From positions 38,936,001 to 39,000,000 of the forward strand of contig CM060731.1 in NCBI GenBank assembly GCA_030704615.1: DNA of 64,000 nucleotides, read 5' to 3'. Numbering within the stretch: position 1 is the first letter of the stretch; the number at the start of each line of letters is the position of its first letter. The translations under genes and the position numbers were made by a program. This document shows, piece by piece, positions 2,680 through 35,115 of this stretch. The notes under the pieces were generated by a model. It did no database searches. It worked only from the letters and a program-made list of their open reading frames with translations, and was not told where the DNA came from. The stretch is from Takakia lepidozioides (lineage: Eukaryota; Plantae; Bryophyta).

Positions 2680-4615
2680 TGCAATGGACATTCATGTTTA
2701 CATTGAATCCCCACAACTGCGGGTTGAATGTGAGAGCTTCAGCAGCTGTAGCTCTTCCTTGGGTTTCAAAGACAATTGAATAAAATCCCATTTCTTTGGC
2801 ATGGCAGAATTACTTGCGTAGCTCGCTAGGACCACCAAGATGACATATTGTCTAGCCTCTCATGTAAGCTCTATCAACTTTCTTTCTTGGGAAGTGAACC
2901 AGAAGTCCATTCTCCTCCATGCATGATACTCTTCTCCCGGATATTGCAAATCATTTTGGATTCTATTTGGGATGTCTTGCTATCTTTGACCCCATATGGG
3001 CACAACATTAGATTGGACACAGTGTGGAAATCTATCAACATAGCGTCCAGATTACATGAAACAGGGTGTGCAAAAATGGTCATCATGATGCGAGATGAGG
3101 CAGTGCTGCCCAAGTTTGTGAGACTCCCCATTGATGAAGATGACAACCACTACTCCATTCGGTCAATTGGAATTGTTGAGTTGCAAAGCTATAAGAAAGA
3201 CAACCAAAACAATGCATGAAATGTGAACGTCATATTATCGATAAACCTAATTATACAGACCTTAAAACTTTGGTCTTCTGTGAGATATTAGTGGATGCTC
3301 AAAGAAATTCTTTCTCTTTATTTATACTTCCCCGCTATGCAGATCACAGCCCTCTTGGCAAAATGGATCCCCAGAGCATTGGCTCATCGCCACAGTCCCT
3401 GGAGCAAGTTAATTCAACCATATCTGATGGGTGCCCAGCCCTCTTCATCACCACTATGGGCACATTCATTGCGATGGATTGTCCAAGGGAAAATGCCAAT
3501 GTGGGGCTAGGATATTCCAGCCCCTGGCAATCTGTTTGGGCAGCATGGCAAGCAATCAGGCCCTTCCTTACCCAGAGGATTCCTTCCAATTTTGCTGAAT
3601 GCTTCCGCCAGCCTCTATTTGGGAATTATAACATGGAGTGCTGTTGTAGCAAAAACCTAAGTGGGCTTTTTTGGGAGTACTGTGGCTTTACACACATGGG
3701 CAGCATTTGGGAGAACGACAACTTCTTGCCAGAGCCATTGGTGAACTTACTGGTGGGCCCTAGGCGTGCTAAGGCTTGGCCTTCCCTGCTGGCTGAAGTG
3801 CCTCAATACATGGTCCTTTTGCTACAGAGGGAGGCCACACATGGAAGCTGCCAGCTTGGTTGGCTTCTACACACAATGGTGGGAACACGGTGATCCTGGC
3901 CCTTGCTCTGGATGACAACTTGGATGCCCTATAATATGACCCCATGGAGTGGAGCTGGATGGACAAACACCACTCCCCTTCTTCGCCTATTCTGTGAAGA
4001 TGGGCTACTCACTGCCGAAACCCACCAAATCATTCATGTTCAAGTGGAAATCAAAATGGGTTCACCTAAATCTGACCCAAAACGATTGGAATAAGGTGTG
4101 GAAAGACATCTGGAGAAAACCAAGGGCTGCAAAAATATCCGGTTTTTTATGGAAGCTGGCTCATAGAATTTTGCCTGTCAACTTGGCTACGCAGCTCAAC
4201 AACTCCTTATGCGCTTCATATCTGTTCCAGCCATAATCTATTGAGCAATGTCTGGCAGAATGTCAACTGCCTGCCAAGGTTTGGAGAGCAGTCTTAAATT
4301 TTTACTCTAACTGGGACTCGCTCCCTTCCCCTCCTCCTTCTTCATTGCTTCTCTTGAATTGGCTGCCTGCTGGTTCTCAAGTTTCATGTCATGTATGGGC
4401 AACTCTGAGGGCTCTCACTTTGTGGAACTTTTGGAAAGCTAGGTGCACCTTTATGTATGAGAGAAAGCCCCCCTAAATATTGTTTTGTATTTACATGCTT
4501 ACTGAGGGAAGAAAAACGTGGGGAATCATGTCTGCAGCTGTTTCCAGAACTTCTGAACAACACGGGCGCAAGCTCCTCAATCGTTTGCAGTCCTGGGGCA
4601 AAGACGACACTCTCG
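2680..4615 (+). mobile_element. Degenerate L1-clade LINE (ORF1 pieces, one inverted, plus 3' end of ORF2)
   Basis: 2930-3170 (IASRLHETGCAKMVIMMRDE..LPIDEDDNHY) matches the ORF1-like sequence at 21330-21570. 2680-2925 matches 21028-21235 on the opposite strand. 4085-4470 encodes zf-RVT-like WNKVWKDIWRKPRAAKISGFLWKLAHRILP and LWNFWKARC. Confidence 0.6.
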
Positions 4616-4619
4616 GCAC

Positions 4620-5821
4620 CTTATGTCAAGACATGCACCACATGCCAACAAAACCGGAGCGAGTACAAAAAACAAGCGGGGCTGTTACAACCCTTGCCGA
4701 TTCCAGAGGGGTCTTGGGAAAGTGTCTCGCTGGACTTCATGACTGCTATGCCGCTGTCAAAAGGATTCGATGCAATCATGGTGGTGGTGGATAGGTTCAG
4801 TAAAATGGGCCATTTCATCCCTACCAAGGAGACGGCAACGGTGCAGGAGACGGGGTGACTTTACTTTCGCCCACGTCTTCAAGCATCATGGACTCCCGAA
4901 GGATATTGTCTCAGACCGCGAGTTTACTAGTAAATTTTGGAGGGTACTTTGGAAGTAAATGGGGACCAGGCTCAAAATGAGCACCGCCTTCCGACCTACG
5001 ATGGACGGCCAAACGGAAAGGGTGAATTCCGTGGTGAAGCAGATATTGCGGAATAAAAAGTCGGCGGATCAATCGGACTGGGTGGAGCACTTGGATGTGG
5101 CAGAGTTCTGTTATAATAACACAAAACACTCCGCAACGGGAGTCTCCCCTTTCGTTTTGGTCTATGGAAAAGCACCTCTGGTGCCGACAAGTTGGGCCGC
5201 CCAAGACGCTGAGGAACCGGCAACAGCGGCAGTGCTGGAAGAATGCGAGCGTTTGTTGAAGCTCGCAAAGTACAACATTGTCAAAGCTAGGAAACGGTAT
5301 AAACGACAGACGAATTGGAAGCGGAGGGAGGTTAAGTTTGAGGCAGGCACGAAGGTCTGGTTGAACATCAAGAATTTTCGACTATCTCCGGAAGTGAGTC
5401 TGAAGTTCGTACCTCCGTATGCGGGACCCTTTCGCATCCGGAAGGTTATGAATGAAGATGTGTATGAATTGGAGCTGCCGGCAACAAGGTACATCCGGTA
5501 TTCCACGTCTCCCTTTTGAAGCCTTACTTTAAAGATGAAGCGCATCCGAATCGGCATCAAGTGTTGCGTCCGCCACCTGTGCTGTTGGATCATGAAAATG
5601 AACCTGAGTACGAGGTGGAGGCAATGCTTAAGTCGAGGAGGTTCAAGAATCGAGAAACGGAGTATCTCGTGAAATGGAAGGGCTATCATCATGTGGAGGC
5701 AACTTGGGTGCGTGCCTCAGAAATGAGAAACGCATCCGAGGCGGTTACAGCTTTCGAAGGGCGACCTCAAAAGCGGAAGAAGCGTTGATGGGGACATCAA
5801 CCTTGGATCGTGGGGGAGGAA
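4620..5821 (+). mobile_element. Ty3/gypsy chromovirus remnant: integrase plus chromodomain, followed by PPT
   Basis: YVKTCTTCQQNR, SLDFMTAMP..IMVVVDRFSK, IVSDR, TDGQTERVN-like and GPF motifs, then chromodomain EYEVEAML..EYLVKWKGY..EATW. Broken by stops and frameshifts. Purine tract GGGGGAGGAAA at ~5812-5822. Confidence 0.9.
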
Positions 5822-7019
5822 ATGCATGCTTAGCCCGGCTTAGCTAGCTCAGGAATCCGATTGCAAAAACTTGTATTGTACAAATTTTGTTATAAATGAA
5901 ATGGTTTCCAAATGTTGTGCGTCCTATTTTGTTTGGAATCGTGATGCATGGTATGGTTGGCTAGTGTGTAGAATGCATGCTAAGCTTACAAAGTGAGAGA
6001 GGTAAATTGGATTAATCGTGTGTTTGTGTAGTACCGAAATCGGGTGACTCCCACCCAAGGGGCAAGGAAACTTGCACCTTCGTTGGGAGTTCACGTGCTA
6101 GTGCGTACCTGGCGCGTGCGCGTACTATAACTGCGCTACCGAGGGGGTTGCCTTGTAGTGTCGGCTAACGCGGAAGCTACGTGCTTCCGTTCACGTACTA
6201 TAATCGTGTAGCATCGGGACGAAGTCACTAGAAGCATTCGTGTCTTTTCCGAATCGACTGCATGTCCAAAACCATTGAGGGAACAACTTTGAGATGTTTG
6301 TTACTACTGCACAGTCGTAACGGATAAATTCACATTTCTAATGGCGGATAGAAGTTGCATCAATGACTCCGCAGTCGGCACAATATTCGCGGCGATTTAA
6401 TTCAATTACGTATATTGTTTTTTTTTTTAAAACAGCAATTACAAGTGGTTTTAAGCACTAGAGAACGACTCTTAACAACTAGGCATTCATTGCACACCCT
6501 ATTCAAAAATGGAATTTTTATAAGTGCTCCACATGGCTCATGACGTGGAATATTTTAATGTATTTTAGGGCTTGTGTGGCTCATAGAGATTGTTCTAATC
6601 GTCGGATGTAAAATGATCTAAGGGTGGAAGAGTAACTTTGTCCTTTGCCTGAATTTCTCTAAGTGTTGGGAGAGGGATGGAGTCTTGAGAGAGAGACGAA
6701 CAAGTGATGCGAGAAGGACGAAGACCAAATCGAGGCCCATGTCCTGTTGTTGCAAGCGTTTATGGCGTCAAGAGCGCATTATGTGCAAATGTGGGCTCTT
6801 GGCTCCCCTTTGTACCATGATTTGGTATTCTTCTTGATGATCACAAGGTTCTTGGGGGAATCAGCTTGGTCTTAACAACCCATATTTTAATCTTTGCCCG
6901 CTCAGCTGCACCGTGGTGGTTCTTACGAACCAATCCCACATTACCTGACTAGAGATACAAACAGCACGTACAAGAGATCTTCTTGGGTTCATGGTCAGTC
7001 TAATCCGCAATGGGTCATG

Positions 7020-7950
7020 ACACAAGGTAGAGGACAATGTGGTGAGGGCACCTTCTTCTTCGAGCTATTTCAGCCTGTTTTGCCGAGATGTAGTGTCGTG
7101 GAGTGCGATGCTTGCATGGTATGCACAGCAGGGACGTAGGATGGAGGCTTTGGAGACCTATGAAGTTGCGAAGGGAGAGTTTGATAACATGGCTGAACAA
7201 GATGTTGTCTCAAGGAACACGCTGAATCTCGCAAGATATGGCCAGTATGTGTGCGGGATGAGGGCATTGGAGACATATGAGCAAATGTTGAGAAGAGGTG
7301 CAGCCTGACCGGGTCACGTTCATTTGTGTTTGCAATGCATGTGCAAACCTGGCAGCCCTGGAGACTTGGTAAAGGGAAAAGAGGTCCATCATGACATTGT
7401 CAAAGCTGGAAATGTACCAGATGTAACAATACCTCGTCGACATGTATGCCAAACGTGGGAGCATTCCCTTGTGGACAAGGAGTGTTTAACAATATGGCTG
7501 AGCGAAATGTGGTGTGGTGGAACGTGATGATCGCAGGACATGCACAACATGGGCGGGGATTGCGGGTTTTGGAGACCTATGAGCAAATGATGTGGGTCTA
7601 GGGGGTGAAGCCCGAGCACATTACGTTTGTTTGTGTTTGTAGTGCATGTGCGAGCCTGTTGGAGAAGGGCAAAGAGGTCCATGGTTGCATCGTCAAAGCT
7701 GGAATTGTGGTAGATGTCATTCTGAACATGAATACCCTTCTAGATAGGGAGTGTTCAACAATATGGCTGAGCGAAATGTGGTATCGTGGAAAGTGATGAT
7801 CGCAGGACATGCACAACAGGGGCGGGGATTGCAAGTTTTGGAGACCTATGAGCAGTTGATGTGGGAGGGGGTGAAGTCCGACCACATTACGTTCAGAGAG
7901 TTCAAATGCCTCTCCACCATGACCTTGCTTAGCTAACCATGCCTTGCTGA
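7020..7950 (+). pseudogene. Degenerate PLS-class PPR gene fragment
   Basis: RDVVSWSAMLAWYAQQG..EALETYE, VKPEHITFVCVCSACASLLEKGKEVHGCIVKAG, FNNMAERNVVSW; many frameshifts and stops; short inverted PPR piece near 7890-7945. Confidence 0.8.
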
Positions 7951-7999
7951 TGTTGTTGTCTTGCACTTGAGCTGTTTTTGGACACTGGCTGGAACATCC

Positions 8000-9900
8000 A
8001 CAAGGCGGCTCTGCTCGAGAGAGAAATCAGCTTGAATGCAGGGGCAGATTTTGAGATCACAATCGCCACTCAGAACGTTGTTCTTTGCACCGGCATGGCA
8101 TGTCAGCATGCATATCAGCCCAAACTCATTACTCCGTGAGCCTTCCACTGCCGGAGTGTGCCCATTCAAGCCAGATCTTCGAAACGCAGGGATGGAACAG
8201 GGTTTTGAAACCAGCATTGCCTAACTGGATACCCAATTCAGCTCCGCATCTTGGTCCATTAATCTGCTGCACATTGTGAAGTTTTCTGCCCGTTCACCGC
8301 AAGTTGAAGAAGGAGTATTCTTAAAACACGGGTACTCATAATCTGAAAATGGCTCCAGCTTATGTTGCTTGAGTGCGAATATGAGTGTGGTTGGCTTGGC
8401 AGCTTTACATCTGGTCCATCCCACTCGATATGATGAGCAGGTTCAGCTTGACTTCTCTCACACAAAAAACGCTGCCAAGATGGGGTTTGCTGCCCTAGAT
8501 GACTTCCCGTCGTTGTTCTGGGCTGCAACATACAATTAATCTGGCCCATGGCGAGGGGCCTTGCCTTCCACCAATCATCTGTAAGTCCTGTGAAACTGTT
8601 TTTGTGGCAGTTTGTAAGCAGTGGGCAGCGATGGTGGGCTGTTGTAGGATTTGATGAACTCAATGTCGTGTATTGACAACAACCCCTCATCTCTTATGCA
8701 AGCATTCAACAAGCCAAGTTGACTACATAGCATATTCAGCCCCCCACGTTTCTAGTTGCCTAATGTTCTTCATCTCCTGGGCAGAGCATTTTCCAGGGTC
8801 TCCATCTGTGATGAGACACTATCTTCTCATGTGGTTCAGCTTCTGGTCTTGCTCTTGTTTGCACCACCCCAATGAAGGGCAGTTCCCACCTGCTTGATTC
8901 TCTCTATATGGTTGTCTTGGGTCTTGGCAGGGTTTCCCACAACCGCCTTTCCTTTTTCAGACTGCCAGTCATCAGCCTCGTTCTCCAATGCTTCACTTTC
9001 TTCACCCTCAGATTTGACAAGGTATTGCTGCCCTTCCTTGTGTCTTTCCTCACTCCCAGCTGCTGGTTTTATCCCAGATTCACCTCTCATCCTTGCCTGG
9101 GGTTTTGCTTGCCAAACAGCCCTTGTGTGGGGAACTTCAACGAAAGGCAACATCTCATTCTCAGCTCCTGTCTTTGTACCTCTTTGCAGCAGTCCAACCT
9201 CGGGTGCCTCACTTTCTGATTGCTGGGTTGCATTCTTCGCCGCCAACCTTTGACAAGAAAGTGTGCTCCATCTTCCTCATCTCCTACTGGTTCCCTTGAT
9301 GCTTCACCTCGTATGTCTTCCTCCTCATGTTTTAGCAGCAGCTCCCATGCTTGAATTGCTACTTTTCCTCGTAGTTGATCTTGTGCTTTCCTTTTTCTCC
9401 GTAGCCTAATCAACAGTTTTGTCTTGGCAGCTTCCTTGCCATGAGTGCCTTGTCTCACTGCATCTCCTTTGGCTGCCCACCATCCGTGGAGTCTTTCTTG
9501 CACTATTCTGACCCTCGTTGGCATGCACTTTGCTGCGATGCCCCACATGTATTTGCTGCTCCCTTTAATCATCAACATAGTGCTCCAGTGCCAGTTCCTC
9601 ATTGTTGACCAGTTGACCTTCTCAGCCCTTGGACCCCATTTTCCCTTCTCCCATGTTGCCTCGTCTTTCTGCTTCATCGTTTGCTTTACTTGCACGATGT
9701 TGCTTCTTCCCTACAGCTCATCATGTGTTGTGGCTCTTTCCCATGTTGCACTCACTCCCATCATACGTTGTGCAGTTGATAAGACTGAGATGAGTTGATG
9801 CAGGATAGGGGGAGGGCTTGCTGGTGTATGTTGTCTGATAGGCCCTATGCACAGAGTCAAAGCTGGAAGTCAGCCTTGCAAGGACCCAAGTGAGAGAAGT
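8000..9900 (-). mobile_element. Probable degenerate L1 fragment (ORF1 tail and start of endonuclease)
   Basis: K/E-rich broken frames 8800-9700, then a degraded (W)NVGGLN endonuclease-start-like motif near 8740-8770 on the minus strand. Confidence 0.3.
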
Positions 9901-10074
9901 CTAGTGGGGGTAGCATCTTGGGGGATGGCAGTTAGGGCAATGTGTGTCTAGGGCAATATATGTCATAGCAGCGGGTGATGTGCTGCCAATTTTGAGGATA
10001 GAGACAGCCTGTAAGCTGTAGATTTGTATAAGTGATTTCTTCTGACACATATTGCTCCCAGTTTGCCACAACCA

Positions 10075-10222
10075 GTTGTTTGCGTTTTTAGTGCATGTGC
10101 AAGCCTGCTGGGGAAGGGCAAAGAGGTCCATGGTTGCATCGTCAAAGCTGGAATTGTGGCAGATGTCATTATGAACAATACCCTTGTGGACAGGGAGTGT
10201 TCAACAATATGGCTGAGCGAAG
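10075..10222 (+). pseudogene. Second copy of PPR fragment
   Basis: Near-identical to 7628-7775 (GTGCATG..GAAGGGCAAAGAGGTCCATGGTTGCATCGTCAAAGCTGG..ATGGCTGAGCGAA). Confidence 0.75.
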
Positions 10223-10242
10223 GATAGAGTGTAATGACTGCT

Positions 10243-11318
10243 AATGAAGGCACCTTCTTCAATTTCACCTTGTTTTCCCCTCTTATCAGAATCGCCCCTA
10301 ATTATTCATGTCTGAATTCTGCAAGTTAGCTGGTTGAGTGAAGCTTTGATAGTTTGGAGTGACTTTGACATGATTCTGCCAATGTGACAACAGGAAAGTA
10401 TCAGAAACAGGTAACACAAACGAGGAGAAGTTGTGGAATGAATATTTTTCTGACCCCAGTCAATGGTGGGACAATCGAGGCAAGAAGGTGAATGTTTGTT
10501 GGATTATAGAGAGTAGCAGATGCAATTGAGCGTAGGAACTAGTGTGATAAGTTGAGTTGGGTGCTTCCTAGAACAAGTCTAGGCTGTCATCGTCAACTGC
10601 TAGCAACAAGGCAAGGTTGTATGCATGATTCGTGCGAGGCATGGATAGTTGAAGGAGCAAGGATAGAGTGTGGGTGCAGATTCACCCAAGAGGGCCAGAC
10701 TTCAAGCTCCAGATTAACTATGAAGCTACAAGAAACCTGCATGGGTAGATGGTCAACTGGCAGCAACGGCACAATTGATAAAATCAGACATTGTTAATGA
10801 AGGCATCTTCTTCAGCACATTTCACCCTGTTTTTCCCTCTTATTAGAATCGGTCCAAAATTTCCATGTTGAATTATGTAAGTTAACTGGTTGAGTGAATC
10901 TAGTTTGGAGTGACTTTTACATGATACTGCTGTGTGACAACAAGAAAGTATCAAAAACAAGTAACAGACATGAGGAGAAGCTGTGGAATGAATATTTTTT
11001 TGCCCCCAGTCAATGATGGGACAACCGAGGCAAAAAGGTGAATGCCTGCTACATTTCAGAGAGTAGCAGACGCAATTGAGCATAGAAACTAGTGTGATAA
11101 GCTGAGTTGGGTGTTTCCTAGAACAAATGTAGGTTGTCATTGTCAGCTACTAGCAGCAAGGCAAAGATGAATGCATGATTTGTGTAGGGGCATGGATAGC
11201 TGAAGGAGCAGGGATAGAGTGTGGTCCAGATTCATCCTAGAGGACCAAATTTCAAGCACAAGATTTACCTATGATTCCCTGTGGATCAATAACTACAAGA
11301 ACCTCCATGGGTAGATGG
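10243..11318 (+). pseudogene. Two tandem ~550 bp units, each with a spliced OSB-type PDF motif
   Basis: Units start TAATGAAGGCA at ~10243 and ~10795. Exon 10394-10487 reads EEKLWNEYFSDPSQWWDNRGKK, then a GT..AG intron, then exon from 10680 IHPRGPDFK. Copy 2 exon ends 11037 (W to TGA); its next exon from 11230 reads IHPRGPNFKHKI-TYDSLWINNYKN-PWVDG with frameshifts. Confidence 0.7.
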
Positions 11319-11319
11319 T

Positions 11320-11545
11320 CTATTCCGTGGAACTCGCTGAAGTCTTGCATTATGAGGATCAGAACTGCTTGACTTGCACGAGGCCTTGACCCTTAGTCAA
11401 TCCCCAGAGCAGCAGTAGCTTTTGGGCTGCTTTTTTACTTTGTGTTTTTCATTTTGTCCCATAAGCTCTTTGAGCTTTCCGCAGATGTAATAAAGTAACA
11501 TTTTGTTTCATTTCATTCATTTTCATTTCATTTTGTTTCATGGCA
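11320..11545 (+). mobile_element. 3' end of RTE-like non-LTR family A with (CATTT)n tail
   Basis: TTTTGTCCCATAAGCTCTTTGAGCTTTCCGC followed by TTTCATTTCATT repeats; same end on the minus strand at ~39112 and ~55477. Confidence 0.75.
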
Positions 11546-11756
11546 TGTCTTTCATCGTTTGTGCATTTGTAATGCATGATTAGTTCTCTTGTATGGCATT
11601 ACTAGTCGACTCACTACAAACACCAAAACTCCAAAGCATGAATCACTATAAATGATTGTTCAAGTAATTTTGAGCACTTCATGTAAAGTAGTAAAGCAGT
11701 GGTTGCGCCAACTTCCGCAGTCGCAATTGCCACTGGGCATGTAGCACTGCAAGTTA

Positions 11757-13287
11757 TGTGGTCTACTATCACGTGGCGCCCCGGGACCGTGGCCACGTGG
11801 CAGCAGTGGTGCTCGTCGTGGCGCCGCCACGTCGGCATCCACATCGTCGTCCACGTCCGCGTCCATGTGTCACCGCGCTTCAGTGAGTCGGTCCACTCAT
11901 CCGGAGGGAAAAGTCAAAGTCAGCCCAAAAGGTCAGACACACGGGCGGCCCGCCTGGTTACGCCACGTGGTTCTTCAACATTAATCGCATTAATCGCTGA
12001 GCAGTTGTTCGCGCGTCTTCGTCCTTTACCACTCCAATCATTGGATGTCCAACCCAACTACCACGTCTGTTGTAACTTCCAGTCGATCCCAGTTTTTTGA
12101 CTTTTACGACTCAAAATGAGTCGTTACCCCAGTGGTAAATGACACGAATGCTTCTAGTGAGTCGTAGTGCGGCTTCGGCGTGTTCCCGTACCTCAGGCCA
12201 GCATTCCAAGGCGGACCCAATTGTAGTGATTGGGGCGCATGGTTGGTTCAAGGTTATCTTCCTAGTAAAAAAGGGTTCAAGGCGAATCCTTGCTCAAGGT
12301 GATGCCAAAAGCGACATCACGAGCGGTCGCAAGCAAATGTTGTTGCAGTAAGGCGATTCGATCCTCGGGGAGGATCATTCCTTGGCCCTGAAGTGGGTCA
12401 AGAAGAGTGCACTGGGAGGAGCTTGAGAGGCTCCACCCTTGGCCGGGACTTGGAGGAAGTCGGCCGAACTAGCTAGTGGAGAGTAGAGTCAAGTGGAGGT
12501 TTGGTTCTTAACCATGGGACGCCATGGTGCGGAAACAAACTCCTTGATGTGGGACGCCACAACTTGGATGTTCGTTTCTACAAAATGGACAAGTCGATGA
12601 GGACATCGACTCCCTGTTGGTAGGGGTGTGTGTTGCGGCCCTTTGCCTTGAGGGCAGGGGGTCGGGACACGTGAGGGGCTGCCCCTGTGGTAGGGGTAGT
12701 GGCAACATTAGTTGCGGGGGCTGAAGCACCCTTGAGTGCCCAAGGCACTCAAGGAGGCGGAGGCGCTCACTAGGTGGAGCCCCGCACATCGGGTTGCGGT
12801 GGGGGTGGTTCCACAAGGGGTGGTGGTAGCTTAGTGGGACTTAGTGGGGGTGGCATAGGACTCACCATGGGGGCGGAGACCTTGTGGTGGGAGTCGTGGG
12901 GAGTCTTGGGACTCATCACGGTCCAATGGGACCGTGGTGGGTGGGCCAAGACTCACCGTGACTTATCACCGGGAATCGAGGGTTTTCGTGGTGGTTCGCC
13001 ATAAAATGGCATGGTTGTTTGTGAAACCCCCACGGACAGTCACAAAAGTATATATAGGGGAGTAGTAACCCCGAGAACGGTGCAAGCCCGTTGGTGTCTA
13101 AAAACTAGTGAGTAAGCGTGCGAGCCGGAAAGCGACCAAGGTGTGGGGAGCTATTCCGGACTGCCATCGACCAAAGGGAATGTCCACTAGGCCCAAATTG
13201 GGTGTCGTGCGCATACATATCGCTACACAACTACATCACTGTCCAAACCACACCACACATATATGCACAATAAAGTAGTCTACCACA
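11757..13287 (-). repeat. 3' LTR (~1.53 kb) of the gypsy element
   Basis: On minus strand PPT AGGGGGGCGA (13298-13289) precedes TGTGGTAGAC at 13287. Matching end ..GTAGACCACA at 11757 gives TGTGGT/ACCACA termini. TATA-like TATATATA at ~13049-13056. Confidence 0.75.
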
Positions 13288-13546
13288 ATCGCCCCCCTAG
13301 CTGGTGGATAGGTCCCTCTACCTCCAGATAGCTACAAGACGTAATAGCCATAGCCGTACTAAGTTCTCTATCACTGTCCCTATCGTACTCAAACTCTATA
13401 GACCAAGAGGCCGAGTACAAGAGTAGCCCCATCGTTGGTCGCCGTCTTGCAATCTGTGAACTTGAGCCAGGACTTCGTGTATTCAAGGTCTCCTGTAGCT
13501 GGGCCTTGCGTTGCTTGTTAGCCTCCCATGGTTGTATCCACTCCCA

Positions 13547-16500
13547 CTATCCAATGCATTGTGGACATAACCAATCCCCATCTGGAACCATCTCAAGAGG
13601 TGGAGTCAAGCACCCCATATGCCAACCTCTAGAGCATCGATCACACACCAGCATGGTGGCTGCCCCTTTAGCAGACCCACACAACATGCACCTCAAACCT
13701 GCAGATACCACTGCCAGGTTTGGGTCAATCCTGCCATCGACATTCGGAAGGTGACATGGCGCACAATTACGCACATGGTCCTTCCAAGTTATGCCATCCC
13801 GACCCTCCAAGACCAAGACGCCTGAGGGCAAGACCTCTCGAACCCTCAAAATAACACGTCCTGCAGTCACATCCAGGGTCGTAGGAGCAGTCTGCTGCAG
13901 ATAGACATAGTCACCAGGGTTGAATCTCCGAACCCCAGGACGATAGCCCCCACCACGTATGGTAGCATACCTCAACGTATCACGGTGTTGTGCAATGGCA
14001 AGGTTCTCGAAAGCCATGGGCATGACTCTCTTGAACAACTCTGCACGCTGCTCACATGCACGTGCCCACACGTCCGGATCGTCAAGGTTAAGAACTGTAG
14101 CAGCTTCTCTGCGAATGGATGTAGGCAAATCCGGCTCTCGGCCAAAGAGAAGAAAGTATGGTGAGAAGGAGGCAAGTGATGCTTGCTTGCTGAACCTATA
14201 GCCCATGGCTAACCAGGGTAACTGAAGGTCCCAATCTCCTAGGTGTCCCTTCTGCAAGCCATACTTGCGCAAACCCCTCTTTACTGTCTGAACAACTCTC
14301 TCTGCCAAGCCATCGGCCTCAGGATGATCCCGAGAAGTGGTGCGGTGGTCTATCAAGGCCTTGTCACACAAAGCCTGAAACTCCCCCAAGAACTCTCTCC
14401 CTTGGTCCGTGAGTACCTCAGCTGGAGCACCGAATCGGCTAAGCACACAATCCAGGAATGCATACGCAGCTCCCTCACTAGCCTTATCAGGCAATGGAAC
14501 CAATTCAATCCACTTGGAGAAGTGCTCCACCATCACCAACACGTACTTGTTGTGGCGCATGGTCAGTGGCAACGGCCCTGCGAAGTCAAGACTCCACCTG
14601 TAGCCCAATCCCATGATCGGAAGAGGGTGCAATTGTGGAGTAGGGGCGTTGAATGAAGCACGCACCCTGTCACACACCATGCACCTAGCCACAAATTGTT
14701 GCACCTCTGTGTGCATACCACGCCACCAATACTGCCCCTGCAGTAGGCTATGGGTGCGTCGCACCCCAAAATGCCCCAACTCCTCGTGGGCATGCCGCAC
14801 TAACCGTGCCCGCTGTGTTGGGTGAGGCACAATCCTCACTCGACCATCCTCCCACACTCGGAGCAGGTGTGTCCCCTCCCACTTGAACCTCTTGGCTCGT
14901 TGTAGGATCCGATCCTTCTCCTTGGCAGTCACAGTGGCTCCCGTGTCTCCAGTGCGAAGATAGTCCAACACAGCTGAATCCTCATGTATATCTTTGGCGC
15001 CACCTTGCTCATTGCTGGCCTCAGGGTCCTCAGACACTTGATCCATAGTCATCCCTGTTGCAGGTCCAACCTGGCCTTCCGCTGCCAAGATACACAGAAA
15101 TGCAGATGCATGCCATCCGGGCACCATCTCCTCGTCCGTCTCACCATGCCACCGAGCTCCAGTCTCATCCTGCTGGCTCGTGCATGGATTGCGACTCAAC
15201 CCATCTGCATTGCGATTGACCAAACCCGGTCGATGCACCACCTGAAAGTCATACTCTTGAAGGATGAGTGCCCACCGTGCAAGCTTCCCCGTAAGCTTGT
15301 CTGACTCCATCAACCACTTGAGTGGTTGGTGATCCGTGACAAGGGTGAAGAGATTGCCGTATAGATAGCACCTGAAGTGTGCCACGGCCCACACTGCAGC
15401 TAAGCATTCTCCCTCATATGAGCTATACTTAGACTCGGCAGCATTGTTCGAGCGGCTAGCATAAGCCACTACGAACTCTCTTCCCTCATCATCCACCTGT
15501 GTGAGCACCGCTCCAAGCCCCAGCATGCTCCAATCCGTATGCAGCTGAAAGGGACGCCCCCTGATAGATCGTCTCAAGATGGGCGCCGAGGTCAACCTCG
15601 CCTTGAGCTCTTGGAAAGCTTGTTCCTGCTCATCTTCCCACTGCCACTCCTGGTCCACCTTGGTCAGCTTGGTTAGAGCCTTTGCAATGGCACTAAATCC
15701 CTTTACAAACCGTCTGTAATAGTTTGCTAACCCCATGAAAGCTCGAACTCGGCTCACATCCGTGGGGCGTGGAACCTGTGCAATGGACTCTACCTTAGTC
15801 TGTTGTACCCCCAATCCTCCAGGATATATCATGTGACCCAGATACTCAATCTGGTTGTGGAAAAACTTGCACTTGCCCGAATGTAACTTCAATCCGTGCG
15901 TCCTCAAGCGCTCAAATACCCCCTGAAGGTGTCTCTCATGCTCCTCCACCGTAGCACTAAAGATGATGATGTCATCTATGTAGCACCGAGCAAACTCCAC
16001 CCCTGCTAGAATCCTATCCATGACTCTTTGAAACTCAGCGGGAGCGTTTTTAAGCCCAAATGGTAAGAACCGCCACTGGTATAGGCAATCCTTCCCGTGC
16101 TCATTGACCCCCCAGAATGCCGTCTTTTGCTTATCCGCCTCCTTGATCGGCAACTGGTGATATCCGGATCGTAAATCCAACGTGCTAAAGACCTTGGCAT
16201 GCCCAATGGCATCAAAGATCTCATCTGGTGTTGGCATGGCATACCTATCGGACTTGGTCTGACGATTTACAGGCCGGTAATCACCGCACATGCGTCTCTC
16301 CGTCCGATTGCCATAGACATCCTTCTTGGCTGGCATCACTGTGGCTGAAGCATACTCTCCACCAGAGAGCTCCACCAAACCTGCCTCCCAGAGATCTTGA
16401 GTCCTCATCTGAATCAAAGACCTCTCCATGTCACTGTATCTATAGGGTCTCCGAAAGATTGGCGTGTCAGTGGCCAACTCAATACGGATCTCTTGACCCT

Positions 16501-16567
16501 TCAGTGCTCCCAAGTCCTTCAAACTGAAGGCAAAGCAATTCCTATAAGCCCTCAGGAACCGCCGCAT
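13547..16567 (-). CDS. Pol polyprotein: reverse transcriptase, RNase H, integrase, C-terminal PHD finger
   Basis: Uninterrupted 1006 aa ORF: RMCGDYR, LDLRSGYHQ, PFGLKNAP, YIDD; RNaseH HTDWS..ECLA..TDHQPL..NADGLSR; INT H-x4-H..C-x2-C, SLDFAGP, LTDQG, DGLAER; C4HC3 PHD at 13690-13556. Confidence 0.95.
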   Translation of the reverse strand: MRRFLRAYRNCFAFSLKDLGALKGQEIRIELATDTPIFRRPYRYSDMERSLIQMRTQDLWEAGLVELSGGEYASATVMPAKKDVYGNRTERRMCGDYRPVNRQTKSDRYAMPTPDEIFDAIGHAKVFSTLDLRSGYHQLPIKEADKQKTAFWGVNEHGKDCLYQWRFLPFGLKNAPAEFQRVMDRILAGVEFARCYIDDIIIFSATVEEHERHLQGVFERLRTHGLKLHSGKCKFFHNQIEYLGHMIYPGGLGVQQTKVESIAQVPRPTDVSRVRAFMGLANYYRRFVKGFSAIAKALTKLTKVDQEWQWEDEQEQAFQELKARLTSAPILRRSIRGRPFQLHTDWSMLGLGAVLTQVDDEGREFVVAYASRSNNAAESKYSSYEGECLAAVWAVAHFRCYLYGNLFTLVTDHQPLKWLMESDKLTGKLARWALILQEYDFQVVHRPGLVNRNADGLSRNPCTSQQDETGARWHGETDEEMVPGWHASAFLCILAAEGQVGPATGMTMDQVSEDPEASNEQGGAKDIHEDSAVLDYLRTGDTGATVTAKEKDRILQRAKRFKWEGTHLLRVWEDGRVRIVPHPTQRARLVRHAHEELGHFGVRRTHSLLQGQYWWRGMHTEVQQFVARCMVCDRVRASFNAPTPQLHPLPIMGLGYRWSLDFAGPLPLTMRHNKYVLVMVEHFSKWIELVPLPDKASEGAAYAFLDCVLSRFGAPAEVLTDQGREFLGEFQALCDKALIDHRTTSRDHPEADGLAERVVQTVKRGLRKYGLQKGHLGDWDLQLPWLAMGYRFSKQASLASFSPYFLLFGREPDLPTSIRREAATVLNLDDPDVWARACEQRAELFKRVMPMAFENLAIAQHRDTLRYATIRGGGYRPGVRRFNPGDYVYLQQTAPTTLDVTAGRVILRVREVLPSGVLVLEGRDGITWKDHVRNCAPCHLPNVDGRIDPNLAVVSAGLRCMLCGSAKGAATMLVCDRCSRGWHMGCLTPPLEMVPDGDWLCPQCIG

Positions 16568-16722
16568 ACGTCGTCTCTCTCCTCCGGTGACAATGGGTCC
16601 AATGTCAGGCTCCCAATTGTCCTCCGTAACTACAACCTTAAGTCCAGTGGGCTTAGAGGTAGAGGACGCGTCCCGTGGTTGCTATGCTGCAACCTCTTGA
16701 GCAATACTCCCTTCCTGCTCAG

Positions 16723-17511
16723 TCACTGCCCCATCATCTCATCATTGAGAACCTCCTCAACTCGAGAAGAATCCCCAACCTCATCCATCACAGCTGCTTT
16801 GGCTGCCAACTCCCTCTGGACCTCTAGTGGTAGTGCTGCTCCGCACATAAATCCCATGCCTCCCATATCTCCTCCCTCAGGAGCAGGAGGTGGACCATCC
16901 CGCCTGGGAGCCGGTACCGCCTGAGCTATAGCCATGGCAGCGAGCCTCTGCTCTAGCTGTTGAAGCCGATTGGCCATGCCTTGGTCAACACCCTGACCTC
17001 CGCGTCCTTGGCCATATGGAGCTTGCCCTTGGCCTGCACCTCGTGCCCGACCACCTCGTCCTCTTTGGGCTGGTCCACCTCGCCCCCGGCCACCATTGTT
17101 CCCTTGGAACTGGCCTGGGCGCAACTCAGGATGCAAGTCATAACACTAGGCATCTCCATGCCCATACTTGCCACAATGCCCACATTGCAACTGTGCAGGC
17201 TGTGCTTGTGCCGGCCTTTTGCCACTCTCTGGGCAATCTCTCTTGACATGGGGTCCTCCACATGTCCAACATATCACCCCTGGTTGTTGTTGGCCTGCAA
17301 AAGACGCCACGGGCCTCTGCACCTGAGGTCCCCTGTAAGCTCCATGGAACTTGGGCTGGGCAGCCTTGCCCCCCTGACCACGCTGTTGGGCAGTCCCTTG
17401 TGTCTGTGGGCTGACAGCTGTGCCCCGTGCAGGCATGTCCTTGCCAAATCCAATTGTAACAACTCGCTCCACCTTGGATATTTGAACAATCTAAGCCGAG
17501 AGTGAGCTTGT
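16723..17511 (-). pseudogene. gag C-terminal remnant with two zinc knuckles
   Basis: CWTCGGPHVKRDC and CGHCGKYGHGDA*CYDLHPELR followed by an RGG-rich tract. In-frame TAG at 17493-17491 and 17148-17146; frameshift toward the pol frame near 16740. Confidence 0.8.
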
Positions 17512-18787
17512 CTTGTTGGAAGCCATGGCCTGCAAATTCACCACCTGAACAACACACTGCATATGCCTTCTGGATATACCCCCACAGCGCACCTCTGGAA
17601 CAACTGGCACAAGACCTTCCTCTGGGATGTGAGGCTGCAGTCGACCTGCAATAGATTGCGGCCAGACTGGAACAGTCCCACCTGCACTCTCAGCAGGCCG
17701 TCCTGATGTGGATTCAGCTGTTGAGTCCAAATCACCATCCAGGCCTTGCACAGGCCGAGTAAACATCAGCCTCTCTGGTAATCCCTGACTGGCGAGTGGG
17801 TTGCTACCATGAACCCCATTTATGGACTCCGTGGGAGATGGGGGAGGCAGGGACGGTGTGGCTTGGTCAGAGTCCTCAACAGAAGGATTATCTTGGTGTA
17901 GAATGGATGCAGCTGCCTTCCGTTGGGATTCCGTTGGCATGGTTGGTACCAGCTGATCTCGGTTAGAACTTCCTGATTTGGCCCTGACAACCACCCTGTG
18001 TACATCCATTCTTTCATGGAGGGGGCCCCCTGTGCCTGACACTTCGAGTGTTTCTCCTAATCCCTCTTCCATCCCATTGGCCAGTATAGCTTTCAAAGAC
18101 GCCTCTCTCTCCCACATCTCTGTTAGTGATGCTTGCAACCGCTCTTTGGCAGCTGCAACCTCCACAATTGGCCTGGGATAATTTGCTCCTAGCTCAATTC
18201 CTGCAGCCCGAAGCACGCTTGCAGAAGCATCCCATGGATGGTGGATCCACTCAGTCGGCAATCTAGCGAGTTCTGGCAACCACCGTCGAACATACTCTCC
18301 CTCTGGATCAAACTTATATCCTTCAATCTGGGGATTTTCCATCCTATCCAGCTCGTGGCCATCTGGCAGACTTCCTGAAATATATTGCCAACCAAGAACA
18401 TCGCACTCTAAATCTGCATCCAAAAGGGTGTCCCAGAAGTACTTCATCCCCCACCTCCAAGGTAGCTGCAAAAACTTCACACAGAAGCTAGAAACCACAA
18501 TGCGTATACGATTGTGCAACCAGCCTGTTGCCCAAAGCTCCCGCATCCCCGCATCCACCAAAGGATATCCTGTGCGCCCTTGTCTCCACGCCTTGAAGTA
18601 ACCCTCATCCACCCGCCAGGGGAATGATTTCAAGTTGGCAAGAAGTGACCTCTCATGTGTGAAAGGGAAGTTGAAACAGAGGTATCTCGAGTATTCTCTA
18701 AAACCAATAGCCCTCAGAAACAAGTTTGCACTCTGGTCACCCACAGTGCTGCCCTCCCGAGCCCAGGCTACCTGTTTGCTTGCGGAC
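17512..18787 (-). pseudogene. CRY1: Intron-less cryptochrome fragment: FAD-binding domain plus CCT/DAS region
   Basis: KQVAWAREG..FLRAIGFREYSRY..WRQGRTGYPLVDAGMRELWATGW..LDADLECDVLGWQ..DPEGEYVRRWLPEL, then DQLVP, STAES and GGTVPVW motifs. Frame is open. Similarity to moss CRY1 (recalled) ends at MASNK. Confidence 0.92.
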
Positions 18788-18788
18788 G

Positions 18789-19143
18789 GCTCTTGCGTCT
18801 TGTCGCGCTACGGAGGGAGGACGAAACCCAGGTTTTCTACAATCATCTATACGACCCGGTGTCGCTTGTCCGGGATCATCGAGTGAAGCAAGGGTTGTCT
18901 CACCATGGAATTTCTGTCCATACATTCAATGGAGATTTGCTGTACGAACCCTGGGAGGTTTATGATGATGAAGGGCAGGCGTTTACCACCTACAACGCTT
19001 TCTGGCAAAAGTGTCTGAACATGCTCTACGAGCCTGAAGCGCCACTTCTACCTCCAAGGCAGTTAGTGGGACCTCTAGGCAAACTGTTGAGCTGTTCAGC
19101 TGAGGAGCTAGGGCTCGAAGATGCTAGCGAGAAGGGCAACAAG
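18789..19143 (+). pseudogene. CRY1: Inverted upstream cryptochrome fragment (photolyase-like alpha/beta domain end and linker)
   Basis: TQVFYNHLYDPVSLVRDHRVKQGL..FNGDLLYEPWEVYDDEG..PEAPLLPPRQLVGPLGK..AEELGLEDASEK, on the opposite strand to the adjacent C-terminal part. Confidence 0.92.
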
Positions 19144-19259
19144 TGATGGAGGAGAGATGGAAGAAGCTGCGGCAGAAGTTAGAGGGCAGCACGCGCTTCG
19201 CTTTGCCTGATTATGACCCCTTACACTGTTCCTTCTTGGGAAAGATGTTTCGGCCCAAC

Positions 19260-19760
19260 CCAGCTTTTGTATGGCCGCGTTCAACCAGTTCTTCACCTCA
19301 GATACAAACCAGCTGCCCCCTGAGCCAGGTTGGCACCAATTACAGACTAGGTTGCACACAAAAACATTGGAGGAGTGAACTTCGTTCCTTTTCTCAACTG
19401 TGCATCACCAGTCGCAATCCATAGCAACAGCCCTTTCATAAGGAACAGAGACACAAGTCCCCAAAGAGCACATGAAACCACATGCAGGTGAAGGTGATCT
19501 GCCTACAATTTGCTTGTCACAGCCTTGAGGCAACAGCCACAACATACCCATTGGACGGAGCAGAAATGGTCTTGTGCATTTCAGAGCTTTCCTGGAGAAC
19601 TCGTCTGACCATCCTTCTGCTACAATTGTGCATGTTGCTTGTACTAGATTGTTGCAGAAGCTACCGCAAGTGGACAGAGTGGCATTTAGCATTTGCAGCT
19701 GACCCCTACAACCTCGCAAGCATCTTGTCAAGAAAGCTGATGCATTCGGTAAAGCCACGT
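19260..19760 (-). pseudogene. Possible degenerate F-box gene fragment
   Basis: Across frames: LP..LDKMLARL*..CHSVHLR*, then MKGLLLW and VFVCNLVCNW. These resemble the F-box motif and the GLL..FVCNP motif of plant F-box proteins. Highly degraded. Confidence 0.3.
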
Positions 19761-20739
19761 TGCGCTGTGAACTGCCTCCACAGCTGAGCCTCTGCTTCAT
19801 TCAGTCTGGCAACGCCATTCTCTTCCCTGCAACAAAATCTTCTGCATCGTCCTCATCTCCTCATCGCAGAAGGGTGTGGCAGACGAGAACTCTCATGTCG
19901 CCACTGCTTAGGGCTGCTCCACGGACCTCAAAGCAGATTGATCAAGATTGCCCACACCAGTACAACCTGACGCAGGCCCTTCTGAAGATGTCGCAACAAA
20001 CTACAAACTGACTCGCTCACAGCCTCAAAAACACGGTAGCGGCTGTCAGCTCCAAGATTGAGTCCCTAGCATAGCTTGAATGAGACGCATAGTTGTGGTT
20101 GAGAGCCTTGGACAGACGAAAAGACCCGACTTCCCCAACAATGCAAGAGCCCACAGAGAAAATAGAAGAATGTGGGGATCTGCATATCTCTTGGACTCAG
20201 TACTCCACTAGATGACCCAAAAGACTGAGGACAGAGTACGGTCGCTGTGCAAACTAGAAACAACGTCCGTGCTTAGTCCACTGCTCGTAGCAACAGCATT
20301 CCATTGCTTGCTGCATCAGTATTGACCCCTTGCACATCTAGCTTCCAGCGAGCCTTGGCTACTCCTTCAAACGTGATAGCGTTGCTCCTTCTGCTGGGCA
20401 GACTCATAGATTACCAAGTTATATTATAATAGTGCTAAAAAAAAACATCATATCTAGCTTAGCACTAGAAAACTAGATAGCTCATCTCTCTCGAGTGAAA
20501 AGAAAGCTAACAAATGACACTGCTCTCCACACAAGAACAATGTGAAATCCAAAACCATCACTCTTTAAAACAGTAGTCGAGCCAGGGGCACCCCAAGCTA
20601 TGGGGACTCCACCCCACAACAACCTACACTCCCATCATGAGTACACTCAGATCTAAACGCACACAGGAGCTCGGTCGCGCAGGCTCAACTCGAGAGAGAT
20701 GAGCTGCGCGACTGCCGCTCTCGTGAAGATAAGACGGAC

Positions 20740-20811
20740 CAGGTGTCAAACTAAACTTGACACCTGATTTAACACTTGACCTAAATCCAAGTGTTAAATA
20801 CAAATAACTAG
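20740..20811 (+). repeat. Two adjacent perfect hairpins followed by CTAG
   Basis: CAGGTGTCAA/TTGACACCTG (20740-20766), ATTTAACACTTG/CAAGTGTTAAAT (20767-20799), CTAG at 20808-20811 followed by T. Confidence 0.7.
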
Positions 20812-20869
20812 TTTTATGCTAGCTGTTTTCACACTGTGCTTATTTAACTTGACATGGGAGAGGGTCTTG

Positions 20870-22800
20870 TGGAGGAGTAAAGGGGGACTGTTATGTTCCG
20901 GTGAGCAGCCGAAGCTCCGAGTTGGCCCGGCGGCCAGTTAGGGAGTTAGGCGCCTGCATCAAAGCGAGTAACTATGACTTGAAGGGGGGGAGCTTACCGA
21001 AGTGAGGTGTGCGACAGGGTGGCTACCATGGAGGAGTTCGGAATTTTGATTCATTTCCACGGGAAGAAGGTGGACAGAGCATTCGTGCGGGATTGGGCCA
21101 TCAGGAATCTGGAGGGCCAGGCGAACTTAGACAGCAAAGTGCGAGGCTTCTATTCTATTGTTTTTGAAACACATGAAGCTGCTACTCCGGCCCTACTGTT
21201 TAACCCTCACACTAAGGGGTTCAATGTTAACATCTTTCTGTGGTCTCTAAAATGGAAAACAAAAATGGGAAGCTATGGGGGCCTCGTATCATCTCGGTTC
21301 CATACATTCCAAACCAATACTTGGTCAACCTGCCCAATATTGCCAATCATTTTGGATCATAGCTGGGATGCCTCATAGTTTTTTACTTTCAAATGTACAC
21401 TTAGAATGTGAGGCAAGACCTACCTTGGAGCTGCGTTACCATTGCATCCCAACTCCACAAAACTGGTTGCGCAAAAATAGTCCTGATGATGCCAGATGAG
21501 GACACTCTGTCTTGCTTTGCAGTCAAATTGCCAATAGATGAAGAGGGGAACTACTTTACTATCCAACTAATTGAGGACACTACTTACGCAACATGCTTTA
21601 ACTGTGGCCAGCTTGGCCACATAAAGGTTGACTGCCCTACAGCTAAGAGAAAGCGTTCCCCAACCATCCTACCTTCCAATCTGCAGAGGCCTGGCCAAGC
21701 ATTTCCACCAGCATCCAATCACCCCATTAATCAAGGTATGCAAACCCCAAGTTTGGGGCAAAGTCTGACAGTTCCTCGGACTGAGCAATTTCCAGTTCCA
21801 CCTCAACAAGACTTTCTACAAAACAGGCCCTGGCTCCGTAATCCTGCCAAGAGCCGTACATCAGTCAAGACCCAATGCAAGATGAAATAAGAGCTCATCA
21901 ATTGTGGAAAGACTCATCAAGCAAGGGAAAAGCTAAACTCAGGGAGGACTCGCATGCTATTCAACTGACATCACCAACCCGCCAACCTGGCCCCAAGGTG
22001 ACCAGAGGTATTGCTTGCAACTCCGAATTCGCCAACGCCTGTCTTCGAATGCAGGCTTCCTTCCCAAGACTGGACCTCAAAGGATGCAACGCCCTGGAGA
22101 TTGTAGAGGCCCCCAAAGCATCATGCATTACACCACTCATCTTCAGGAAAGGTAACCCACATGCCATGCTCATTACATCAGACGACCGGGAGTGCATTGA
22201 ATCACTTTGGATTACAACTTCTGACATCAAACACTTTGTAAAGACTTGTCCCCCCGACAATAACCCAAAGATTCTATTCAAACAAAAAATTCAAGATTCT
22301 TTCCACGCATTCTTACCCCATTACTTTCTTGCTCCAACCATGATTTCCTGGGGAGCATACATGGAAGCTGACCACCCAGGCCTAAGCTGTTAACCGTCAA
22401 CGCAAGTACTGGCCTTTATGGAAGAGGCTCAGATTCTACTCCTCAACCATTGATAGCTATGTGGACCTATGAAGAATGGCTCGAAACCCCTGGAGGAAGT
22501 CATAAGCTGCAGATCCAAAATCAAGATACAGTGCTGTTTAATGGTTTCCAAATGCTAGGGGCTTTCCTTGAGTCTGAAATAGAAGAGGACAATCATAGAA
22601 TGGAGATCCAAAGGACTCGAGACTTCATTAATGGAGTTAAGGCACCTGAAACTTCCTCAGCCTCCTCGGACTCCCAAGTGGACTCTTCTTCGGCAGAGGC
22701 GAAGGTCAACAAGGATGATTTGGTGACTAATGTTAGTACTCTGCACATCTCCCCACCGTCAGTCATTGACACTACTCAATTCACTTCTCAGGAGAGCTCC
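20870..22800 (+). mobile_element. Degenerate L1 ORF1 region with CCHC zinc knuckle
   Basis: RRM/DUF4283-like GFYSIVFET segment and CFNCGQLGHIKVDC at ~21594-21635; frameshifted; homologous to 2680-3170. Confidence 0.65.
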
Positions 22801-23134
22801 CAACCATTGGTTTTAACACCTAATTCTCAACTCTCTCCTAATCAGGTTCTCTCCTCACTATCTCCCTGTTTTTTCGTCCAGGTCTTTTCCAGGTTCACTA
22901 ACAGATGCTGGATGTTGTGTGGCAAAGAAAAACTTCTCTCTAGCAGGAAAAACAGGCATTTGTTTCAGTATTCAACTTGCCAGATAACATACCCTTTGGG
23001 TACTTTACCCTCGGATGGTTCCCTTGCTGAGAGGTATCCGGATCTTCATAGTTTGTTAACGACAGATTTTTTCCCAATAGGTGTTACCATCCAGTCAGTT
23101 TCCATCTCCTCAGTACCCTCAGATCAATAGCCTT

Positions 23135-35113: not shown

Positions 35114-35115
35114 TC

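Follow-up and report, generated by a model that had tools for sequence, protein, structure and literature searches.

How a cryptochrome (CRY) coding sequence devoid of introns came to occupy the place of the 5' part of a gypsy-type retrotransposon is the question raised by a 64,000-nucleotide stretch of the Takakia lepidozioides genome (assembly GCA_030704615.1, contig CM060731.1, positions 38,936,001 to 39,000,000 of the forward strand; hereafter the window, in whose own numbering coordinates are given). A sequence-only reading had proposed that a CRY cDNA was recently captured by or into a long terminal repeat (LTR) element. It is proposed here, with a probability of about 0.68, that the block 13203-19277 is a single chimeric cDNA, made by the reverse transcriptase (RT) of a gypsy-type retrotransposon and later fixed in the chromosome as a dead copy. 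A retrocopy joined to an element is indeed present, but a clean capture is not what the block displays: it is a mosaic with at least five joints and no 5' repeat, in the order TAA fragment, CRY N-terminal piece, filler, inverted CRY C-terminal piece, gag, deletion and pol. Its anatomy is established from Pfam, tblastn, DNA alignments and mapped intron sites as follows, given in ascending coordinates.

13203-13332, minus strand: 3' non-coding end of the retroelement, with the polypurine tract (PPT) AGGGGGG at about 13298-13292 and the start of the 3' terminal repeat (the "Y" block); 73% DNA identity to positions 13127-13268 of the Calypogeia fissa element L006, which hold its PPT and first terminal-repeat block.
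13547-16567, minus strand: intact pol open reading frame (ORF) of 1006 aa, with RT, RNase H, integrase (H2C2 and rve) and a C-terminal PHD finger (Pfam).
16682-16711, minus strand: last nine ORF1 codons, GSIAQEVAA, and the ORF1 stop (16684-16682), in the pol frame; aligned with GSVASPEVVA-stop-QPQ... of L006 and continuing into pol, 63% over 120 aa.
16712-16920, minus strand: zone of about 210 nt that contains the internal deletion joint, with about 825 ORF1 codons gone and a frame shift between gag and pol (comparison with the related elements L004, L006 and L007).
16921-17472, minus strand: nucleocapsid part of gag, equivalent to ORF1 residues ~265-463 of L006, with two zinc knuckles, a G/R-rich stretch and a MANRLQQLEQRLAAMAIAQ helix (tblastn with the ORF1 of L006 and L004).
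17463-17490, minus strand: CRY non-coding sequence reaching about 28 nt past the stop and overlapping the first weak gag similarity, GGTGGAG (DNA alignment with the alternative exon in intron 4 of Marchantia and Sphagnum, and with Calypogeia gag).
17491-17511, minus strand: CRY alternative exon 4b, encoding TSSLSA and CRY's own stop, TAG at 17493-17491 (C-termini of other bryophyte CRYs).
17512-18787, minus strand: CRY residues ~263-690, the FAD-binding domain and C-terminal extension (Pfam, tblastn, intron mapping).
18788-18825, no strand assigned: filler of about 38 nt at the head-to-head joint between the two CRY pieces, with no match to CRY cDNA on either strand.
18826-19140, plus strand: CRY residues 94-198, part of the photolyase alpha/beta domain, inverted relative to the other CRY piece (Pfam, tblastn, intron sites).
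19141-19277, plus strand: mRNA fragment of a TAA/TAR-type (Alliinase_C) aminotransferase gene of auxin synthesis, residues 529-574 of the Sphagnum homologue (Pfam, tblastn).

The larger CRY piece contains a minus-strand ORF at 17491-18744 (417 aa) that matches Pfam FAD_binding_7 with E=2e-70; CRY residues 263-695 correspond to 18780-17506 at 70% identity to Sphagnum CRY and 65% to Marchantia CRY (tblastn, E=0), and, aligned as DNA to a CRY cDNA contig, the piece can be followed to ~18787. The C-terminal extension has the motifs DQLVP (17958-17944), STAES (17724-17710) and VPVW (17673-17662), in agreement with the sequence-only reading, which had described about 1.27 kb of CRY coding sequence, with the FAD pocket and these motifs, as open throughout; this holds for 17491-18787. 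The first Met of the ORF is at 18546, with no ATG before codon 79 of the piece. The smaller piece, CRY residues 94-198, matches Pfam DNA_photolyase (2e-13) and is 80% identical to Sphagnum and 73% to Marchantia CRY by tblastn. The two pieces lie head to head around the filler and both have open reading frames; residues 1-93 and 199-262 are missing and residues 94-198 stand on the opposite strand, which leaves the N-terminal photolyase domain incomplete and not contiguous with the FAD-binding domain. The two pieces represent separate regions of the gene; a repeat search within the 64 kb found no sequence in common between them, and so no hairpin.

That the three host pieces all come from spliced messages is established by conserved intron sites. 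The CRY genes of Marchantia (L001) and Sphagnum (L003) have five exons each, with introns at residues ~102 (FYNHLY/DPVSLV, phase 1), 178, 414 (NPQ/IEGY) and 690 (SHK/...), the Sphagnum sites being taken from boundaries of high-scoring segment pairs only, and the first three of these sites are also conserved in at least 12 genomic moss-type CRY loci of metagenomic origin (L042-L056 and others). The window is seamless at all four, namely at ~18853 and ~19065-19080 in the plus-strand piece and at 18328/18327 and 17512/17511 in the minus-strand piece. Since these sites are conserved, the CRY sequence is, as far as its intron positions tell, mRNA-derived, which is what the sequence-only reading had suggested from intron positions that are continuous here. 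The TAA fragment (Pfam Alliinase_C, 1e-9; tblastn 53% to residues 529-579 of a Sphagnum protein, E=6e-14) joins the CRY N-terminal piece directly at 19140-19143 in a different frame. The last intron of this gene family lies at NP^AF, with CCAG/GTATGT in the locus L089 and the same in L090, and the window reads NPAFVW across that site without a break; the TAA piece is therefore spliced as well. Restricted searches with a threshold as loose as E=20 detected no other TAA exon in the window. The fragment was also considered as a native exon invaded by the block, with PAF/gtatgg as its boundary, and this was rejected, because the real site in Sphagnum and L090 is NP^AF (CCAG/GT), which is read through, and no further TAA exon exists. 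All five intron sites tested, four in CRY and one in TAA, are thus seamless, which argues against capture at the DNA level, as by Pack-type TIR elements or Helitrons; no inverted or terminal repeats were found around the block in the 64 kb.

The end of the CRY message is the natural one. The same or almost the same C-terminus as the tail SNK/TSSLSA-stop is found in Physcomitrium "cryptochrome-1 isoform X3" and in one protein each of Sphagnum magellanicum and Riccia, and matching sequence, cag followed directly by ACAAGTTCACTGTCGGCTTAG, sits inside intron 4 of the CRY genes of Marchantia (~4349-4372 of L001) and Sphagnum (~4660-4690 of L003), behind an AG acceptor. The TSSLSA segment is therefore a conserved alternative exon (4b), present as the annotated C-terminus in Physcomitrium, Sphagnum magellanicum and Riccia and conserved at the DNA level in Marchantia and Sphagnum. 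In bryophyte CRY genes exon 4b codes for (T/K)SSLS(A/V/T) plus a stop, and the resulting isoform is without the basic C-terminal tail of exon 5. What was copied into the window is thus a transcript with exon 4 spliced to exon 4b, up to its natural stop at 17493-17491 and about 28 nt further. As a fossil, the retrocopy attests that heritable cells of the host contained mRNA of the short "TSSLSA" CRY isoform.

This bears on the joint between CRY and gag, which the sequence-only reading had described as in frame and interrupted only by TAG. Positions 18744, 17472 and 17136 do share one frame, with TAG at 17493-17491 and 17148-17146, but the sense of a fusion protein is lost, because the first TAG is CRY's own stop in a conserved exon and is followed by ~28 nt of CRY non-coding sequence. 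There is accordingly no CRY-gag reading frame, and the shared frame is a one-in-three coincidence without coding meaning. The junction had been placed at ~17512; position 17512/17511 is instead the splice junction between exons 4 and 4b, and CRY runs on to ~17463, which puts the joint near 17463-17472, recognisable gag starting at 17472 (VERVVTIGFGKD). The motif GGTGGAG is common to the flank of Marchantia CRY exon 4b, Calypogeia gag and the window at 17463-17472, a comparison made across species, and this sharing hints at a microsimilarity joint at ~17463-17472. No A-run or tandem tract follows the CRY stop, the sequence passing straight into gag, and no target-site duplication of the kind left by a retrocopy of the long interspersed nuclear element (LINE) type was found. 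A 30-mer spanning the joint had 0 matches in metagenome contigs, and exact look-ups were negative as well.

In the retroelement part of the block, Pfam matches in pol are RVT_1 (3e-32), RT_RNaseH (7e-36), Integrase_H2C2 (4e-16), rve (7e-14) and PHD (PF00628, residues 960-1004, 1e-10), in the order RT, RNase H and integrase with rve, and the C-terminal PHD finger is common to most close relatives. At full coverage pol is 68-78% identical to its closest relatives, which come from liverworts (Calypogeia, Riccia, Marchantia), other assemblies and metagenomes; remoter relatives occur in Klebsormidium and Closterium, and many of the pol relatives have a DNA methyltransferase (DNMT) domain. On the strength of this similarity the element in the window, a deletion derivative, is placed in a DNMT-carrying, PHD-finger gypsy lineage, an assignment read from protein sequence. 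Tblastn shows the gag segment 17472-16921 to be homologous to ORF1 of two elements, L006 of Calypogeia fissa (E=1e-21) and L004 (E=5e-5); its first zinc knuckle is CWTCGGPHVKRDC (17271-17233), and its second (17184-17143) is CGHCGKYGHGDA followed by a stop and C, the stop being the sole one inside gag, TAG 17148-17146.

The losses of the element are established by comparison with intact relatives. In L004/L005, L006 and L007 the full plan is an ORF1 with capsid, two zinc knuckles, a linker, an aspartic protease (Asp_protease_2) and a C5-DNMT (DNA_methylase), then one in-frame stop and pol. The window keeps ORF1 residues ~265-463 and onward, the last nine ORF1 codons and the stop, pol, the PPT and the first 3' repeat block; it is without capsid, 5' repeat and ~825 codons (~2.5 kb) that include the linker, protease and DNMT, and its gag and pol frames differ. 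No protease was found in any frame between 16567 and 17250, and the 5' repeat, the N-terminal part of capsid and the protease are nowhere in the 64 kb; nor is there in the 64 kb an LTR pair, a direct repeat pair or a second copy of 11500-13546 (repeat search; blastn, word size 8), and no second "Y" block was seen at the 3' end. These results uphold two further statements of the earlier reading, namely that the 5' LTR and capsid region are absent and that CRY sequence sits in place of the 5' part of a gypsy-type element, which it meets at the equivalent of L006 ORF1 residue ~265. Without a 5' repeat the chimera cannot transpose.

The intact relatives deserve mention in their own right. DNMT-bearing gypsy elements, with an ORF1 of capsid, nucleocapsid, protease and DNMT and a pol of RT, RNase H, integrase and PHD finger, are present in liverworts; the Calypogeia fissa L006 element (3782-13709) has a split repeat layout, with X at the 5' end and Y-X-Y at the 3' end, and this copy looks recent because its repeats are 99% identical. 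ORF1 and pol lie in the same frame with a single stop between them (9857-9869 in L006, 5408-5423 in L004, and as a remnant 16684-16682 in the window), which suggests that pol is expressed by stop read-through in this lineage. DNMT-bearing gypsy elements have been reported for Klebsormidium (PMC5890265), and no report of them in bryophytes was found in the searchable literature; the liverwort elements appear to have been recently active.

The copy appears recent. In an alignment and tree in which both CRY pieces were entered as one row with X between them, the CRY copy has 5 unique changes in 170 columns that are at least 95% conserved among 54 CRYs, and functional CRYs have 3-7. There are no frameshifts or stops in 1.6 kb of CRY, nor in 3 kb of pol. 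The copy is thus probably young or, less likely, constrained, and the recent origin that the sequence-only reading had suggested is consistent with intact CRY and pol frames and no excess of changes at conserved CRY columns. A quick maximum-likelihood tree places the CRY copy as sister to Sphagnum and Physcomitrium-type mosses (approximate likelihood-ratio support 82). A native, intron-less mTERF-family gene of 759 aa in the same window (47610-49889, minus strand; Pfam 3e-85) has a Sphagnum protein as its best database relative (77%), and since the CRY copy and this native gene are both nearest to Sphagnum, the CRY sequence is taken to be of host origin, and the host to be a bryophyte of the moss lineage. 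The search for a parental CRY returned database homologues of at best 71-73% identity (Sphagnum nearest), the host's own proteins not being among those searched, and none of 80 metagenomic CRY loci exceeded 72% overall or lay beside a retroelement of this kind.

The most likely route to this mosaic would start with minus-strand cDNA synthesis from the 3' end of the element (PPT and terminal repeat) after the first strand transfer, proceeding antisense through pol. A first template switch would have skipped the protease and DNMT, after which the nucleocapsid part of gag would be copied. A second switch would have moved the RT to a point ~28 nt past the stop of a spliced CRY message, the exon-4b isoform, which it would have copied back to codon ~263. 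After ~38 nt of filler, synthesis would have continued on a template of opposite polarity (switches 3 and 4), which most simply would be another nascent cDNA, itself a chimera of CRY(94-198) and TAA(529-574). Four or five template switches in total may thus have occurred, and synthesis would never have come back to the 5' end of the element, which would account for the lack of capsid, primer-binding site and 5' repeat. Because a product without a 5' repeat calls for a non-canonical entry into the chromosome, the presumed route is uptake at a chromosome break or a one-ended integration. The observed order along the plus strand, namely the element 3' end, pol, the deletion, gag nucleocapsid and CRY from 28 nt behind the stop to codon 263 (all antisense), then filler, CRY 94 to 198 and TAA (sense), is as expected for a single growing minus strand and favours it; we infer on this ground that all joints came from one run of reverse transcription. 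The joints lie at mid-gene positions, not at the termini of the element, and element ORF sequence has been replaced rather than interrupted.

Several observations weigh against this account. Under the canonical model the chimera should be flanked by both terminal repeats, and the 64 kb contain neither a 5' repeat nor a second "Y" block. Two of the host pieces have the opposite orientation, and this requires a switch onto a DNA or antisense template, which is rarer than switches from mRNA to mRNA. The right-hand end of the mosaic past 19277 has no defined limit, and a single copy is at hand. The sharing of GGTGGAG is known from sequences of other species only, and any microsimilarity at the joints would have to be judged against the host's own parental CRY, TAA and intact element.

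Some of these features are what one would expect if separate cDNA fragments of the element, CRY and TAA, or short templated copies of them, had been end-joined in random orientation at a double-strand break. Capture of Ty1 cDNA at breaks in yeast and filler DNA in plants are precedents, and the mixed orientations, the 38-nt filler at 18788-18825, the direct joints, the missing 5' repeat and a right side without a recognisable element end would all fit; as every host piece is spliced, the substrate would still have been cDNA. Random ligation, however, predicts no such order as the one seen, which fits a continuous nascent strand from the element 3' end and in which the succession of the CRY pieces along the element is still the native one, 5' to 3', though one is flipped. 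Typical filler is moreover much shorter than pieces of 0.13-1.3 kb together with 4 kb of element, and we regard such a patchwork as unlikely, though less so than the other alternatives. A slower history would begin with an older processed CRY pseudogene, beside or within which a full element landed; the 5' repeat, capsid, protease-DNMT region and CRY 3' end would then have been lost through deletions and an inversion. Such a history agrees with the shared orientation of the CRY C-terminal piece and the element, and LTR elements are commonly truncated by illegitimate recombination. It would need at least four independent rearrangements while point decay stayed almost nil (pol and both CRY pieces open, one stop in gag), and this near absence of decay argues against any long stepwise history. 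Neither a poly(A) remnant nor a target duplication of a LINE-type retrocopy is present, and CRY is joined to mid-gag instead of an element terminus; the mid-gene joints and missing poly(A) argue against a LINE-type pseudogene beside a normal insertion. We consider this course of events improbable.

The assembly itself might be at fault, as cDNA or transcript contamination or misjoined reads could give intron-less pieces with abrupt joints in a chimeric contig. Joints to internal retroelement sequence together with an inverted piece of the same gene are unlike a simple misjoin, the GC content is even (0.50-0.58) along the whole block, and the surrounding 64 kb are ordinary genomic sequence with native genes, which makes an artefact very improbable. 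Finally, the locus might be a domesticated or expressed chimeric gene giving a truncated CRY (the C-terminal extension with the greater part of the FAD-binding region, from the first Met at 18546) or antisense or small RNAs acting on the parental CRY. The CRY frame stays open for 1.29 kb, contains all three motifs of the C-terminus and shows no excess of damaging changes; this openness is equally expected of a very young neutral copy, and against expression stand the lack of an ATG before codon 79, the missing N-terminal domain and residues 199-262, the absence of a promoter-bearing 5' repeat and the absence of shared sequence, and hence of a hairpin, between the CRY pieces. Expression as a gene is in our view the least credible explanation. 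A truncated CRY or small RNAs from the locus are putative products, possible but unsupported. In a wider scenario, a DNMT-carrying gypsy lineage so far described from a charophyte alga would be recently active in bryophytes and would carry out multi-gene retroposition in a moss-like host that branched off early, and the locus would be transcribed to give a truncated CRY with the COP1/SPA-interacting extension of the exon-4b isoform or an antisense RNA against the parental photoreceptor; this is speculative and very improbable.

The reading of the block as one chimeric cDNA made by a retrotransposon RT is therefore retained, and the locus is probably a young, dead-on-arrival, single-copy chimera. 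It is a clean and young example of an LTR-element RT shuffling pieces of host mRNAs, events that are barely documented in bryophytes as far as literature searches showed. Because a single nascent strand with four or five switches, one of them to opposite polarity, would account for all its pieces, the locus should be useful for the study of retrotransposon replication errors. Its biological importance is modest, because the locus is most likely inert as a gene.

Around the block, Pfam searches of ten ORFs and blastn/tblastx against all fetched loci recognised nothing in 19278-21000 and 11500-13202. A dispersed repeat family occurs in both orientations at 39104-40761, 52001-55565 and 11438-11524 (77-90% identity, with local tandem units at 52258-53797), and on its left side the retroelement block cannot reach beyond the copy at 11438-11524. 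On the other side, four ORFs in a row at 21007-23130 (plus strand), one of which has a canonical CCHC zinc knuckle (Pfam zf-CCHC, 1e-7, ~21591-21638) with weak likeness to the nucleocapsid of L004 ORF1, probably belong to an unrelated retroelement just outside the mosaic and form its gag-like part. Farther away, an ORF with a malectin-like domain (42381-43301, minus strand; Pfam 2e-28) is probably an exon of a receptor-kinase-type gene. The inverted repeat at 35114-35248 and 36098-36232, with 135-nt arms that are 98% complementary, 849 nt between them and a nested second pair at 35305-35399 and 35911-36005, is a young foldback element or one resembling a miniature inverted-repeat transposable element. 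Diverged tandem copies of ~270-420 nt lie at 7084-7865 and 10076-10177, where 102 nt (7627-7728) are repeated at 10076-10177 with 93% identity; to judge by their motif, these copies may be units of a pentatricopeptide-type gene.

Among known systems, LINE-type processed pseudogenes resemble the block in being intron-less copies of mRNA. The block differs from them in having no poly(A) and no target-site duplication, in a 3' end that is fused to gag ~28 nt past the stop, and in being fragmentary and partly inverted. In retroviral oncogene transduction the 5' joint arises by read-through or deletion and the 3' joint by a non-homologous RT switch. The block shares with it a spliced cellular segment in sense orientation, which a non-homologous switch would have attached to internal viral sequence, and a loss of viral genes; transducing retroviruses, however, keep both LTRs and the packaging signals and depend on a helper, whereas the block has neither a 5' repeat nor a primer-binding site. 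The element lineage itself has a likely counterpart in KnitGypsy-Dnmt3 of Klebsormidium nitens, which has a DIRS-like repeat structure (de Mendoza et al. 2018, PMC5890265) that the split repeats of L006 resemble. Like the pol relatives of the window (L004, L006, L007 and proteins of Klebsormidium, Closterium and Marchantia), it combines RT, RNase H and integrase with a DNMT; in the window the DNMT and protease are lost, and the relatives gathered here are from bryophytes and have a C-terminal PHD finger.

Closer still is maize Bs1 (Jin and Bennetzen 1994; Elrouby and Bureau 2001, 2010), which, as summarised in PMC13317346, is a plant LTR retroelement with fragments of several cellular genes replacing its own coding sequence. 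As that summary has it, Bs1 differs from the block in having both LTRs and several copies and in carrying its captured pieces in one hybrid expressed ORF; in the window CRY ends at its own stop and the pieces differ in frame and orientation. LTR-mediated retroposition in animals, yeast and plants generates partial, multi-gene, poly(A)-less retrocopies in place of internal ORFs (Tan et al. 2016, PMC5131818, with yeast Ty1 examples cited there). The block agrees with these retrocopies in that an intron-less partial copy of host mRNA replaces part of an internal ORF, in drawing on more than one parental gene, in its arbitrary joints and in lacking poly(A). Those described in PMC5131818 are flanked by both LTRs and can retropose again, whereas the block has no 5' repeat, two inverted pieces and a second internal deletion in the element. 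With function unsupported, the locus is most likely a further example of this known process, that is, LTR-mediated retroposition of the Bs1 or Drosophila kind.

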